A stretch of 64,000 nucleotides of DNA. It comes from Camelus ferus. Taxonomy: Eukaryota. The position numbers were made by a program, and so were the translations under genes. Below, piece by piece: positions 57,317 through 61,480 of this stretch (the first letter of the stretch is position 1; the number at the start of each line of letters is the position of its first letter). The stretch lies in assembly GCF_009834535.1 (NCBI RefSeq), contig NC_045732.1, forward strand, positions 79,980,001-80,044,000. The letters are read 5' to 3'. The notes under the pieces were generated by a model. That model was not told the origin of the DNA, searched no databases, and was given only the letters and a program-made list of their open reading frames with translations.

Positions 57317-58723
57317 AGAGCCCGAGGGCTCTTCAGATTACAAGTGTGCTCTCTGCGAACAGTTCCAGAACAACCCAAAGCGCTGAGCTCACAGACCACT
57401 AGAGACACACGAAGAGCACCGTCCTGTAACCATGAACATTTTGGGCTTTAATAAAGAAAAGCAAAACTCCCCGGGACTAAATAAACAATCTGCGAGACCC
57501 GCGGGTCCGTGTTCTTTCTCGCGTTCGATTCCGCACACCTCTCACCAGATAAGCCCGCGGAGGCTGGAGACCCCGGCCGGGGGCAGGCTTTGGTCCCCAT
57601 CGGCCTCTTGCATCTGAAGCTGTGGCATCTCGGACACCCGCCCAAGGAGGTGGGGAGCGAGCACTGAGGCGAGCCCAGGAAGGTCTGGTCCGCTGGGCCG
57701 GGCCTGCCCGTCAGGGGACAGACAGCCTGGCTTCTGACCTCGGGGGTGTCTCCCCCCCATTACTCATGCATCGCGGAGCAGGAGGGTCTTCCTCCTGGGT
57801 CCCCCAAGGATGCCAGAAGTTTCTGATCAGCAGCTCAGCGTCTCCAGCTCACGATCCAGGGGCCCCCCACGGAGGCCCGCCGAAAAGTAGGGCCACCCCC
57901 TCCACCAAGGGCTGAGAGCACTGCAGCCTGGCTCCGAAGAGACGGGGGGTTGCAGTCAAACGCCTGGGGGGAGGCCCGTCACCCTCGAAGGTAGCAACCA
58001 CTGGAAACCCTACTCTCAAGTGACCAACCCCTCCCCCCCCAACAAATGTATAAAAGATCTCCCACCCAGCGAACACCAGCACTGCTCACTTCCATCAGGG
58101 CTGTAGTTAGGACCCTTTCTTGGGACGTGAAGCGGCCGTGCGGCACGTCTAACACACCGGCTCCGTGAGCCAAGGGACACTTTACAACAGGGCGAGAGTC
58201 ATCTGCGAGGCAGACGGTGCTCTTTCTGAGTCCGACGTCCTCTTGCCCGGGAGTCAGGCCGTCGCTGGCTGGTGACTCCCTGGCAAGCACTCAGCGCCCG
58301 CTCCAGCCGTCCCACATCGTCTCCTGGATGCTCTTCAGACCCTCTAGGGGTTTTGACCAGAACAAAGGCGGGGAGAACACTCACCAGCTCTCTCAAAACA
58401 CATTTCTCTACACAATCCAGAATCAGCAGGGCCAGAATGAGCAGCGGCCTGCAAGGCCGCTTCCCCTTGTCCTAGAGGTCCAAAGTCCTTGAGACTCTGT
58501 CACCGAGCCCAGGGAGGCATCTCCCTGCAGGGGTCCCGCTCCCCCGTCCCCGCGTCCCGGTGGACACATCTGTTTCCGGGAACAGCACAGAGTGGGGAGC
58601 GCCCTCCAGGGCGGCGCCGATTCAGAGCGAACCAGGGGAGCACGTCCAGGGCGTGACGGCGAGCTGACCGTGCCACGGTTTAGCTTGGTCTCTCGGTCAC
58701 CTCCTCTCAAGAGCCCACGCTGC

Positions 58724-58947
58724 TCAGGCCTCTTGCCCAAAGGGGACCAGGTGCTTGGGGACGTCTACCTGGAAGATGCCCTTCCCGCCTCTCCTGGGCA
58801 CGGGCTCCAGTAACCACCGGGGGTTGGAGAGCGTGGTCAGGTACTTCTGCTGCAGGTTGGTCAGGACGGCTCGATTCTCCAGTTCCACAACCTCCTCGGG
58901 ACCTAAGTTTTCTGGGCACAGCAAAGTGTCCCCAACGTCAACGAGCC
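58724..58947 (-). pseudogene. EOLA1/EOLA2: Isolated terminal coding exon of EOLA1/EOLA2 (CXorf40A/B, ASCH-domain protein)
   Basis: [74 protein letters not shown] matches the CXorf40 C-terminus. Phase-1 acceptor ctttgtgcacag|GG at 58948/58947. The upstream MKFGCLSFRQP exon was not found in the window. Confidence 0.85.
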
Positions 58948-59156
58948 CTGTGCACAAAGAGAGAAGCACACAGATGTCTTCCCTTCCATAAACCAGGCCT
59001 GCCCCTAAGAGAACATGGTTATTCAAGGTCACAACCACTAGAGACGGAGGCGATATCAGCACGTGGACCCAGAGTCAACTGGGTCGCGCTGGCTGAGCAC
59101 TTCCGAGGAACCGACGTCCCTCTTCAGGGCACTTGGGGCGAGGCCCAGGGAGGGAG

Positions 59157-61480
59157 ACATTTTCTTCTCATTGCTCCCCCAAATTCTAATTCCATGTTAT
59201 CTTGTTCAGGATGACACAATAAGATTGGAGATTTATAACTTGTTTTACAAAAGAGCAAATCTCTTGTGTTTGAACTCGATAAGGATACAGACATTGTGAT
59301 TAATGTCATTGACAAAGTTACATAGTGAAGCTTATTAAATCTTCTGATACAAGGAACACCACTGAAAAATTCCTACAGGAAACAAAGATCAATTTCCATG
59401 TCATCATAAGGGACGGGAGGAGCCCAGAGATGCTGTACACCGTGTACCCCCAACTGGCCCGGGCTGTCACCCCTTAGGAGGCTGCCTGCTCGCTCTCCAA
59501 ACACACAGTGAAGGATGGACTCACTTCCGGCCCGACAGGAGAAGCTGCCGGACAGGGGCCTGGAAGGAGCCCGGCTGCAAGTCTGGCTCAGGGCCACTCT
59601 TTCTCATCACTCAACACCTCTTCAGACAGGGACAGGAAGGAACTGAGATTCCTTGTATTGACCCTGAGCAAATGCTCCAGGACTTGCAGCTTGCTGGTCT
59701 CCGCGTGGTCCCGGGGCCCCCACAGGAGCTCGTAGCAAGGGGGATCGCTGTTGGGCACCTGCAGGTACTCCACATACCCCTCCCGCACCCACACGTTGGT
59801 GACGAGCTCCCTGGGCTCCCCGTAGATGCAGTGCTCCCTCCCGGGATACACCCCCATGACACTCAGTGCTTCCCACATCTTCTCCTCAGTGGCGCACTCT
59901 CCCTCCAGGAGGATCACACCCAGGAGCATCACCAGGAGGCCGTTCTTGGGCATGCTCTGCCCATCGCCCAGCATCCCGTCACAGGTGAGGCCCAGGGTGG
60001 GGACCAGGACATACGAGTGCTCCCTGGGGTCCACCTCCTTCACATCCACCCCAAAGACCAGCTGCACACACTCAGAGGCTTGGCTCAAGACCACAGGGAA
60101 GTGGTCCTGGTCATCTCTGAGGACCGCATTCAGCATGTCTTCCTTTGTGGTCGGCTCCTTTGAGTGGTACTTCAGGAGCAGGAAGCTCACCAGTTCAGCC
60201 ACCTTCAAATGGAGTGGGTCTGGGTGTGAGGACTCGGCATCTGCCGGGTCCTGCCCGGTGCTGGGCCCCTCCTCACCTTGGCTTCTGAGGCCATTGTCTT
60301 CCGACTGGCTCCAGGGAGGGGCTGCCACGGCTGTGGGGGAGGGGCAGACACCCTGAGGGCTCTGCGCGGGACTGGGTGTCCCAGAATCAGCCACCTCCTC
60401 CACTGCCCAGCAACAGGACTGAGTAGGAAGACGAGGAGGAGAAGGAGGAGGAGGAGGAGGAAGAGGAGGAGGAGGAGGGAGACAACGGGGATGCGCCCTC
60501 CTCCTCCTCAACCCAAATGTCCTGCTCATCCTCGGAATCCTCAGCCTCTCTTGGGTCGTGAAAGTCGGCTTCAGTGTGGTGGAGGTCACGCATCTGAACG
60601 GGAGGCACGGTGAGTGGTGTCGGGCAGCTGAGAGCAGCGAGGGCAGGGGTGACAGATGGGGACCCACGGGCCTGGGGGAGAAAGGGAGTGTCAGTGACCC
60701 GGGCTGAGAAACCCACCCTGAGGGGCTCTGACAAAGGCTACTTACAGGTCTCCTCTTCAGGGGTGCCCTCGGCCTCACAGGGGCTCTCCTCCTGGTGGAC
60801 GGTCGTCTGTGAATCTGACGGGGGAAGTGAGGCGGCTCCTCAGGGTGCAGCCGGCACAGCCCGAGGTTCTGAGGACGCCAGAGGGTGTGTGGAGTGGACG
60901 TAGGCCTTGTGGGGTCCCCTCTGTTCCCAGAGCCCCCGGGTACACACTCAGGGCCCACACCTCACCTTCAGTCCTGGCACTGCCGGCCTCCTGTGCTCTG
61001 TGACCCGAGGACACGTGTCTCAGACCTAGGCCTTCCCGGTGTCTGGAGCCCCTGGGAGAGAAAGGAGGGGAGATCCTCGGATCTACACTGTGGCACAGCC
61101 CTGGACCCGCGTGCTGGCAGGAGGCCTGGGCTCTGGCAGGTTCCCACTCTTCTAGAGTAGGAGGTCCTGTCCGCGCTAACTCAGGGTCCTCACCGGGACT
61201 CCAAGCGGGACCTGGGATTCTGCTCTCCAACCACCTGAGGGCCCCATCCTGATAGTAGGTCCCCGGTCTCTCTGAGCCCTGGATGCCGAAGTCAGGACAC
61301 ACCACGTGTGCTCATCCCGCATTGAGGCCTCCCAGGGCTGACAGCAGGGGCAGGATCGGTTGTGTCCCCTCTGTTCTAGGGTCTCAGGTCCCCTCACTCC
61401 TCCCTTAGGGTCCTCACCTTGACTGCTGGCGGGACCTGGGATTCCCCTCTCAGCCCACCCGAGGCCCCGCCCATCATACC
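59157..61480 (-). repeat. Direct repeat of 24495 to about 26880 (long MAGE 3'UTR, CDS and 5' region)
   Basis: Offset 34662 at the stop codons; 8 aa differences in the MAGE domain. Confidence 0.9.
59588..60593 (-). pseudogene. MAGEA: MAGE-A long form L2, frameshifted
   Basis: The ATG 60593 frame stops at TGA 60387-60389. A 2-nt loss near 60401-60406 relative to L1 (CTG GAC ACC CTG GAG vs CTG GGC AGT G GAG) separates it from the MAGE-domain frame. Also WGPRA to WGPRD. Confidence 0.8.

Follow-up and report, generated by a model that had tools for sequence, protein, structure and literature searches.

Introduction

Among the closest known counterparts of the locus studied here is the MAGEA, HSFX and EOLA1-EOLA2 (CXorf40A/B) amplicon of human and primate Xq28. 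This region is X-linked and multicopy and is organized in inverted and tandem repeats that are nearly identical. These three gene families also occur together in a stretch of 64,000 nucleotides from Camelus ferus (RefSeq assembly GCF_009834535.1, contig NC_045732.1, positions 79,980,001 to 80,044,000 of the forward strand), hereafter called the window. We analyzed in this window the point at which a MAGE-A8-like copy, L2, abuts on the 3' half of an EOLA gene, and to which an earlier note on the same DNA had drawn attention. In primates, HSFX has been reported to be ampliconic and expressed after meiosis (PMC13616518).

Read-through and cis-spliced chimeras belong to a well-known kind of transcript (PMC2953495, PMC6393300). 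The camel locus is reminiscent of conjoined genes, transcription-induced chimeras and cis-splicing of adjacent genes (cis-SAGe), in that two neighbours lie on the same strand and the upstream unit is devoid of an efficient terminator. However, the downstream partner is here a promoter-less 3' fragment and not a gene. Moreover, read-through would be predisposed by a DNA rearrangement, instead of resulting from a regulated failure of termination.

A second parallel can be drawn with fusion genes born at duplication breakpoints. Breakpoints of segmental duplications can place partial gene copies beside the body of another gene, the product being then amplified and homogenised by gene conversion. 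The camel seam likewise juxtaposes a partial gene copy to another gene. In contrast to such fusion genes, no new open reading frame (ORF) joining MAGE and EOLA is evident, and the plausible effect concerns the formation of the 3' end of the MAGE mRNA. Compared with primate Xq28, the camel breakpoint cuts the MAGE 3' untranslated region (UTR) and the EOLA intron, and leaves a MAGE gene lacking its polyadenylation (poly(A)) signal beside the 3' half of EOLA. We know of no such junction in primates, our comparison having been made among camel loci. The camel seam was not described in the literature that we searched; it is an ordinary amplicon rearrangement of a known type and not a new kind of biology.

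Structure of the seam

The interpretation that we favour, and to which we give roughly three chances in four, is that L2 and the EOLA fragment meet at the head-to-tail seam of a tandem segmental duplication of about 34.5 kb, in the MAGE-A8-like/HSFX/EOLA amplicon of Old World camels. Of the two breakpoints, one would have cut the MAGE-A8-like gene within its 3' UTR, 3 nt ahead of AATAAA; the other would have cut EOLA in its only coding intron, leaving 208 nt before the terminal exon. Every internal unit of the array would then carry a MAGE gene with its promoter, 5' exons and coding exon but without a canonical poly(A) signal, followed 209 bp downstream on the same strand by the 3' half of EOLA (acceptor, terminal exon, 3' UTR and ATTAAA) without promoter or first exon. 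The first unit of the array would retain an intact EOLA, and the last one a MAGE gene with its native AATAAA, a position that would be held in the window by the copy L1. We propose that the seam formed once before the split between Bactrian camels and dromedary, and was later re-amplified and patched by gene conversion.

Comparison loci were fetched around annotated camel EOLA and MAGE proteins. Five of them carry an intact EOLA: L001 (C. ferus), L002 and L009 (C. bactrianus), and L004 and L005 (dromedary). Five others bear the junction: L006 and L007 (C. bactrianus GCA_048773025.1), L008 (CamDro3), and L010 and L011 (dromedary GCA_036321535.1). L006, L007, L010 and L011 come from gapless assemblies and contain no Ns; counts out of six copies refer to these four, L008 and the L2 of the window. 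The features concerned are the following.

24486-27090, minus strand: reference copy L1, intact 335-aa MAGE-A8-like gene with native AATAAA (24491-24486), presumed last unit of the array (self-BLAST, ORFs, Pfam)
60746-60814, minus strand: 5' UTR (penultimate) exon of L2, without ATG, last base 60746 (60814 is the coordinate of the earlier note; the exon end is that of camel MAGE models)
60594-60745, minus strand: 152-nt intron of L2 with acceptor ...GTTCAG, AG at 60595-60594 (tblastn, residues 1-34 of P0092 at 60593-60492)
59588-60593, minus strand: MAGE-A8-like coding exon of L2, ATG 60593-60591, stop 59590-59588 (ORFs, Pfam)
59157-59587, minus strand: truncated MAGE 3' UTR of L2, 431 nt, with TATAAA at 59232-59237 (alignment, hexamer scan)
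59155-59157, minus strand: duplication junction; 59157 is the last base homologous to L1 (24495), 59156 matches neither parent and 59155 is the first base of the EOLA intron
58948-59155, minus strand: remaining last 208 nt of the 799-nt EOLA intron, with polypyrimidine tract and acceptor AG at 58949-58948 (alignment to L001, L002, L004, L005 and L009)
58724-58947, minus strand: orphan EOLA terminal exon, coding portion for residues 85-158 with stop at 58726-58724 (homologues, tblastn)
57447-58723, minus strand: EOLA 3' UTR as far as ATTAAA (57452-57447), the nearest canonical hexamer at 1704 nt beyond the junction (hexamer scan)

Self-BLAST of the window aligned L1 24495-27090 with L2 59157-61759 in the same orientation (minus strand), with 89.5% identity over 2630 columns. 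In the base-level alignment, the identity runs to ...GAGAAGAAAATGT (24495 in L1, 59157 in L2), the last shared letters, AAAATGT, standing 3 nt before the AATAAA of L1. Past the match, L1 continues with AAG and AATAAA (24491-24486, minus strand), and L2 with a single unmatched C (59156) and then, from 59155 on, with EOLA intron sequence, 59155 corresponding to position 10845 of the intact EOLA loci. Both methods thus agree with the earlier note, in which the homology of L2 to L1 stopped at 59157 (= 24495), just before the AATAAA of L1. A gapless realignment at the seam gave two substitutions and the single unmatched base, and no microhomology was found there in the base-level alignment. The join is blunt with one extra base, and is consistent with an end-joining event.

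The spacing of the breakpoints is that of one repeat unit wherever it could be read. With breakpoints at L1 24495 and at 59155 in the EOLA intron, L1 and L2 are spaced by 34,662 bp in the window and run in the same orientation. The junctions of L006 and L007 are separated by 34,455 bp on the Bactrian X (record coordinates), and in dromedary 34,375 bp lie between the breakpoint position in the intron of the intact EOLA L004 and the junction of L010. Breakpoints in the same orientation and one unit apart argue that the segment between them was duplicated head to tail. The sequence of L1 from 24495 stands to the right of the seam, and that of the EOLA intron from locus position 10845 to its left. 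Upstream of MAGE, the loci L007, L010 and L011 carry the sequence that is found upstream of L1 in the window. Both ends of the array could also be recognized, since the intact EOLA of L004 is located one unit before the junction of L010, and L1, one unit after L2, retains AATAAA. The fusion of MAGE into an EOLA intron described in the earlier note is thus read as a head-to-tail seam and not as an insertion into a working EOLA gene: intact EOLA paralogues are located elsewhere, and what stands of EOLA at the seam is a truncated duplicate that has neither promoter nor exon 1.

The identity of the EOLA and HSFX sequences was drawn from PDB sequences, homologues and annotated loci, Pfam having recognized neither the EOLA half-domain nor the HSFX ORF pieces. 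The pyrimidine-rich acceptor of the EOLA exon ends in ...TTTGTGCACAG, and the first base of the exon is 58947. Its translation matched residues 83-158 of human CXorf40A/EOLA1 (E = 6e-36) as well as residues 85-158 of camel EOLA, with 100% identity to EOLA of C. ferus and C. bactrianus and 97-99% to that of dromedary. The acceptor is thus the intact EOLA acceptor, on the same strand as MAGE, as had been claimed. The missing upstream exon was confirmed too: neither a motif search nor tblastn with full-length camel EOLA detected the first coding exon in the window. The five intact loci possess both exon 1 and the terminal exon, with 799 nt of intron between them. A complete EOLA comprises a promoter and two exons (residues 1-85 and 85-158), of which the window holds residues 85-158 only. 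In L001 the coding intron appears to have a GC donor, G/GCAAGT at 10253/10254, and would be a GC-AG intron.

EOLA1 is an ASCH-domain protein of which the crystal structure is available (5Y7D; PMC6803910). The window encodes residues 85-158, which match the human protein, but they represent the C-terminal half of the ASCH fold only, without start codon or first exon. No EOLA protein can therefore be made here, and the fragment should not be counted as an EOLA gene.

The window itself is GC-rich mammalian DNA crowded with large near-identical repeats, and contains five MAGE copies, two HSFX arms and one EOLA terminal exon. Over 18 kb, its identity reaches 99.8% with loci of C. ferus GCA_009834535.1 and C. 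bactrianus GCA_048773025.1, and 99.0-99.3% with dromedary loci. Because of these identities and of the EOLA exon match, it can be identified as an X-linked MAGE-A8-like/HSFX/EOLA amplicon of a Bactrian-type camel. The seam and the inverted intact EOLA are 73.1 kb apart in dromedary (L011 to L005) and 72.6 kb in the Bactrian camel (L007 to L002); in the window, the same distance amounts to 59.6 kb plus the content hidden by a 100-N gap at 4669-4768. These distances place an intact EOLA immediately beyond the left edge of the window, where the left palindrome arm has its outer end; the right arm ends in the truncated copy.

Recurrence in camel assemblies

A 26-mer across the seam is identical in L006, L007 and L008, and its 15-mer core is also present in L010 and L011. 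Neither was found in the intact EOLA loci L001, L002, L004, L005 and L009. Conversely, the homology of all five intact loci to the window ceases exactly at 59155, that is, at locus position 10845, 208 nt upstream of the EOLA terminal exon. The recurrence of an identical 26-mer in three independent loci, and of its core in five, is judged to be far beyond chance. Around the seam, the window and L006 show a single difference in the 1157 bases below it (59156-58000) and none in the 244 bases above it (59157-59400). As read from this distribution between Bactrian camels and dromedary, the seam is older than their split.

The gapless Bactrian assembly contains two junction-bearing units of 34.5 kb in tandem (L006 and L007, C. 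bactrianus chrX 113.73-113.78 Mb) and the window one. This difference is either a copy-number variation or a collapse.

Possible transcript 3' ends

We scanned the minus strand, from the MAGE stop codon (59588-59590) to position 57400, for 13 hexamer variants. Four hits were obtained, namely TATAAA at 59232-59237, AAGAAA at 59161-59166, AAGAAA at 58116-58121 and ATTAAA at 57447-57452; neither AATAAA nor ATTAAA is present in the 431-nt 3' UTR of L2. The scan therefore bears out the loss of the canonical hexamer and the persistence of a weak TATAAA at 59232-59237, both put forward previously. All six junction-bearing copies have this TATAAA, 81 nt before the seam, and L1 has TGTAAA at the same place. 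TATAAA may compensate for the lost hexamer as a weak poly(A) signal, or the difference may be due to chance; being conserved, it may be taken as a serious alternative 3' end for the junction-bearing MAGE copies. On the other side of the seam, the EOLA acceptor is conserved in 6/6 copies, with ATTAAA 1695-1704 nt past the seam. The MAGE and EOLA pieces are same-strand neighbours, both on the minus strand and 209 nt apart.

Type I MAGE promoters are expected to fire in testis. If the promoter of a junction-bearing copy does so, its transcripts would have to end at a non-native site, which would be either TATAAA or a site beyond the seam. Three routes could lead beyond the seam: unspliced read-through, splicing to 58947 from a donor-like GAA/GTGAGT found in the L2 3' UTR near 59525/59524, and splicing to 58947 from the donor of the 5' exon at 60746. 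The EOLA fragment would supply the 3' end of such seam-crossing transcripts. These would be non-coding only in the case of the 60746>58947 exon-skipping isoform, or of any isoform of the frameshifted window copy, and a read-through mRNA of a sister copy would still encode MAGE. Exact look-up of a 63-aa ORF spanning the junction and of the dromedary chimeric model P0053 found no contig.

One could even imagine that the junction-bearing MAGE-A8-like copies are functional testis genes, which for several million years have used the orphan EOLA exon and 3' UTR as a captured 3'-end module, through read-through or splicing within the 3' UTR. We regard this as rather improbable. If it were true, the MAGE mRNAs would carry an EOLA-derived tail antisense to the HSFX 3' end, coupling MAGE and HSFX expression in each unit.

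The seam offers a clean natural case in which a breakpoint removes a poly(A) signal and yet sets an acceptor, an exon and a poly(A) module just downstream. It could be used to test how the loss of a 3' end is compensated (weak variant hexamer versus capture of a terminal exon), and how ampliconic cancer-testis genes tolerate damage at their 3' end. Rescue of the 3' end is directly testable here because the seam is conserved, multicopy and tied to intact MAGE ORFs that lack a canonical poly(A) signal. The seam also explains the MAGE-EOLA chimeric models and the 91-aa and 131-aa "EOLA/MAGE" fragments of camel annotations, as well as the mis-ordering of the region in gapped assemblies.

Alternative explanations

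Several points weigh against the tandem-duplication interpretation. L006 and the window L2 differ from L007, L010 and L011 in their further-upstream flank; a single simple duplication with subsequent copying therefore does not account for the whole history. To the right of L2, both the window and CamDro3 show EOLA-upstream sequence on the far side of gaps, accompanied by exon 1 in CamDro3, which at face value puts L2 inside an EOLA gene. The frameshift of the window copy could be an assembly artefact of collapsed paralogues. The ratio of non-synonymous to synonymous substitution rates (dN/dS) among the junction-bearing MAGE copies is 0.6-1.2, which neither shows nor excludes function, so that a continued function of these copies is not demonstrated; values around 1 are usual for MAGE-A genes and are confounded by gene conversion. 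Finally, both the rescue of MAGE 3' ends and the chimeric RNA considered below are predictions from DNA sequence.

Two alternatives concern what becomes of the seam. The earlier note proposed that the MAGE promoter drives a non-coding chimeric germline RNA, produced by read-through or by 60746>58947 splicing, and ending at ATTAAA 57447-57452 antisense to the HSFX 3' end. The proximity of the two pieces on one strand, the loss of the canonical MAGE hexamer and the conservation of acceptor and ATTAAA in the six copies are in favour of such an RNA. Its donor CCT/GTAAGT is present at 60746/60745 (GTAAGT 60745-60740) and is used in annotated camel MAGE models, those from RefSeq and GenBank (P0094, P0100, P0209) ending the exon at the same ...TPEEET position. 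The skipping of one exon on each side would be in keeping with cis-spliced chimeras, in which the upstream gene typically loses its last exon and the downstream gene its first (PMC6393300). In addition, two MAKER models of CamDro3, KAB1253406 and KAB1253407, join MAGE and EOLA coding sequence. We give little weight to these models, however, because they sit on a frameshifted assembly and take their acceptor from within the EOLA exon, about 45 nt below 58947, and because MAKER retained models with an annotation edit distance (AED) <= 0.5 (PMC7468183); they could be homology-driven merges. Furthermore, RefSeq calls the gapless sisters MAGE protein genes (182 aa for L006 and L007, 327 aa for L010 and L011) and not chimeras, the conserved TATAAA may end transcripts before the seam is reached, and the non-coding character would be limited to the frameshifted window copy or to exon-skipping isoforms. 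In view of these objections, the chimeric RNA as originally formulated seems to us doubtful.

Just as unconvincing is the opposite idea, namely that the junction-bearing MAGE is untranscribed or negligibly so, and that both halves are decaying debris kept similar by gene conversion alone. It is in line with a dN/dS close to 1 and with the broken ORF of the window and CamDro3 copies. The orphan EOLA exon has remained protein-identical to the intact copies despite having no possible coding use, which indicates that homogenisation alone can preserve a sequence at this locus. On the other hand, full ORFs have persisted in four of the six copies across a divergence of about 5-7%, L2 and L006 share 99-100% identity over the promoter and 5' exon region, and RefSeq models exist for the sister copies.

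It was also suggested that L2 might be merely intronic, an EOLA exon 1 located in or beyond a 100-N gap splicing over the MAGE block to 58947, with MAGE nested in an enlarged intron. The feature at stake is the right edge of the window.

62159-64000, no strand assigned: 100-N gap (62159-62258), then sequence normally located about 4.8 kb upstream of EOLA exon 1 (comparison with intact loci)

The position of the segment 62259-64000, and the order of L008, in which three gaps and then an L2-type block come after exon 1 (9165-9419), would fit with a nested MAGE. However, there is no EOLA exon 1 within 10 kb upstream of MAGE in the four gapless copies L006, L007, L010 and L011, which belong to two species, and for this reason we rejected nesting as the principal explanation. 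In the Bactrian assembly, about 233 kb separate MAGE from the nearest intact EOLA on the same strand, which possesses a terminal exon of its own. Moreover, both supporting scaffolds, which share the same order at this edge, are gapped exactly at a repeat boundary, as expected for collapsed 99.8%-identical paralogues. The adjacency seen at the right edge of the window is probably such a collapse or a scaffolding effect, since the gapless L006 matches the window up to 62158 and then continues differently. A nested MAGE is thus very unlikely.

As for a chimeric contig resulting from mis-assembly of the window's genome, which the earlier note had named as a possible refutation, it can be ruled out for practical purposes. 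The ampliconic nature of the region, the gap in which the contig ends 3 kb right of the junction and a 160-bp patch of L2 resembling another MAGE paralogue would speak for it; however, the identical junction is present in five loci of three other assemblies (the four gapless copies without any N, from two species, and the CamDro3 copy), with both flanks of the window junction 99.9-100% identical to L006.

Coding capacity of the MAGE copies

The MAGE homology domain (PF01454) was recognized in the L2 frame (E = 2.8e-12) and in L1 (E = 5e-15), and the nearest proteins are camelid "melanoma-associated antigen 8-like" proteins, with 90% identity. As previously claimed, the 5' exon at 60746-60814 contains no ATG. 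From the ATG at 60593, the canonical frame of L2 meets a stop codon at 60389-60387 after 68 codons, owing to a deficit of 2 nt near 60404 relative to L1, L006 and L007. MAGE_N is accordingly divided over two frames in the Pfam analysis, and the homology domain goes on in the other frame up to the stop at 59590-59588. Despite the frameshift, a 313-aa ORF beginning with an out-of-frame ATG (MSRTFGL...) extends from about 60530 to 59588 on the minus strand and covers the complete MAGE homology domain.

The sister copies behave differently: L006 and L007 possess uninterrupted ORFs of 335 aa, and L010 and L011 of 327 aa (RefSeq XP_064338967 and XP_064338971), while the ORF is broken in the window and in L008. 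The word pseudogene used in the earlier note is thus appropriate for the window copy, and for that of CamDro3, but not for the four copies of the gapless assemblies. The frameshift may reflect polymorphism, a difference between species or an artefact of the assembly.

L2 and L006 show about 45 differences clustered inside the coding exon, between nearly identical flanks. With respect to L1, L2 is a mosaic, the 3' half of the coding exon being 98.6% identical and the 5' half 77-84%. Within a patch of 160 bp (60245-60406), L2 displays 17-20 differences from L1, L006 and L007, and the frameshift is located at the edge of this patch. At the protein level, the patch resembles the MAGE-A8-like paralogue P0092 and the alpaca protein P0087. 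Its donor was found neither in the window nor in the fetched loci. The patch represents a mosaic due to gene conversion or else a consensus drawn from collapsed paralogues; it may be ancestral rather than a recent conversion, since alpaca P0087 has the same mosaic as L2. Gene conversion is evidently frequent at this locus.

In CamDro3, the orphan EOLA exon of L008 (about 20935-21154) is frameshifted and the MAGE ORF is broken in several places; neither lesion is seen in the newer dromedary assembly. These lesions are probably indel errors of the older assembly, and would explain its 91-aa and 131-aa gene models.

HSFX and the EOLA isoforms

The EOLA 3' UTR converges on an HSFX gene.

55881-57455, plus strand: convergent HSFX, coding sequence 55881-57386 in two exons, AATAAA at 57450-57455 (translation, matching annotated loci)

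A 362-aa product with PF00447 is found at the matching HSFX position of L001, L002, L009 and L010. The HSFX AATAAA lies 64 nt after the end of the coding sequence, and overlaps the ATTAAA of EOLA, on the opposite strand, in the 9-mer TTTAATAAA (57447-57455). A second plus-strand AATAAA is present at 57480-57485.

The antisense overlap with the HSFX 3' end, to which the earlier note had pointed, does exist, but every intact EOLA locus has the same arrangement. Because it belongs to the repeat common to all these loci, the convergent overlap is ancestral and native to every EOLA-HSFX pair, and was not made by the fusion. Similarly, the ATTAAA at 57447-57452 is present, but it is not necessarily the end of the transcript, since annotated EOLA isoforms leave the "terminal" exon through a donor at 58769/58768 and splice onward over 8 kb. 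The isoform X2 proteins (P0027 and P0028; RefSeq, four camelid annotations) end in ...GIFQ-EQH, encoded by means of this donor and a small exon at 50898-50887. If these isoform models are right, some EOLA transcripts would already run antisense through all of HSFX. The ...GIFQ-EQH ending is found in EOLA isoform X3 proteins as well. The small exon (50887-50898, minus strand), 8 kb downstream and antisense to HSFX, falls within the 3' UTR of the MAGE copy located at 50 kb.

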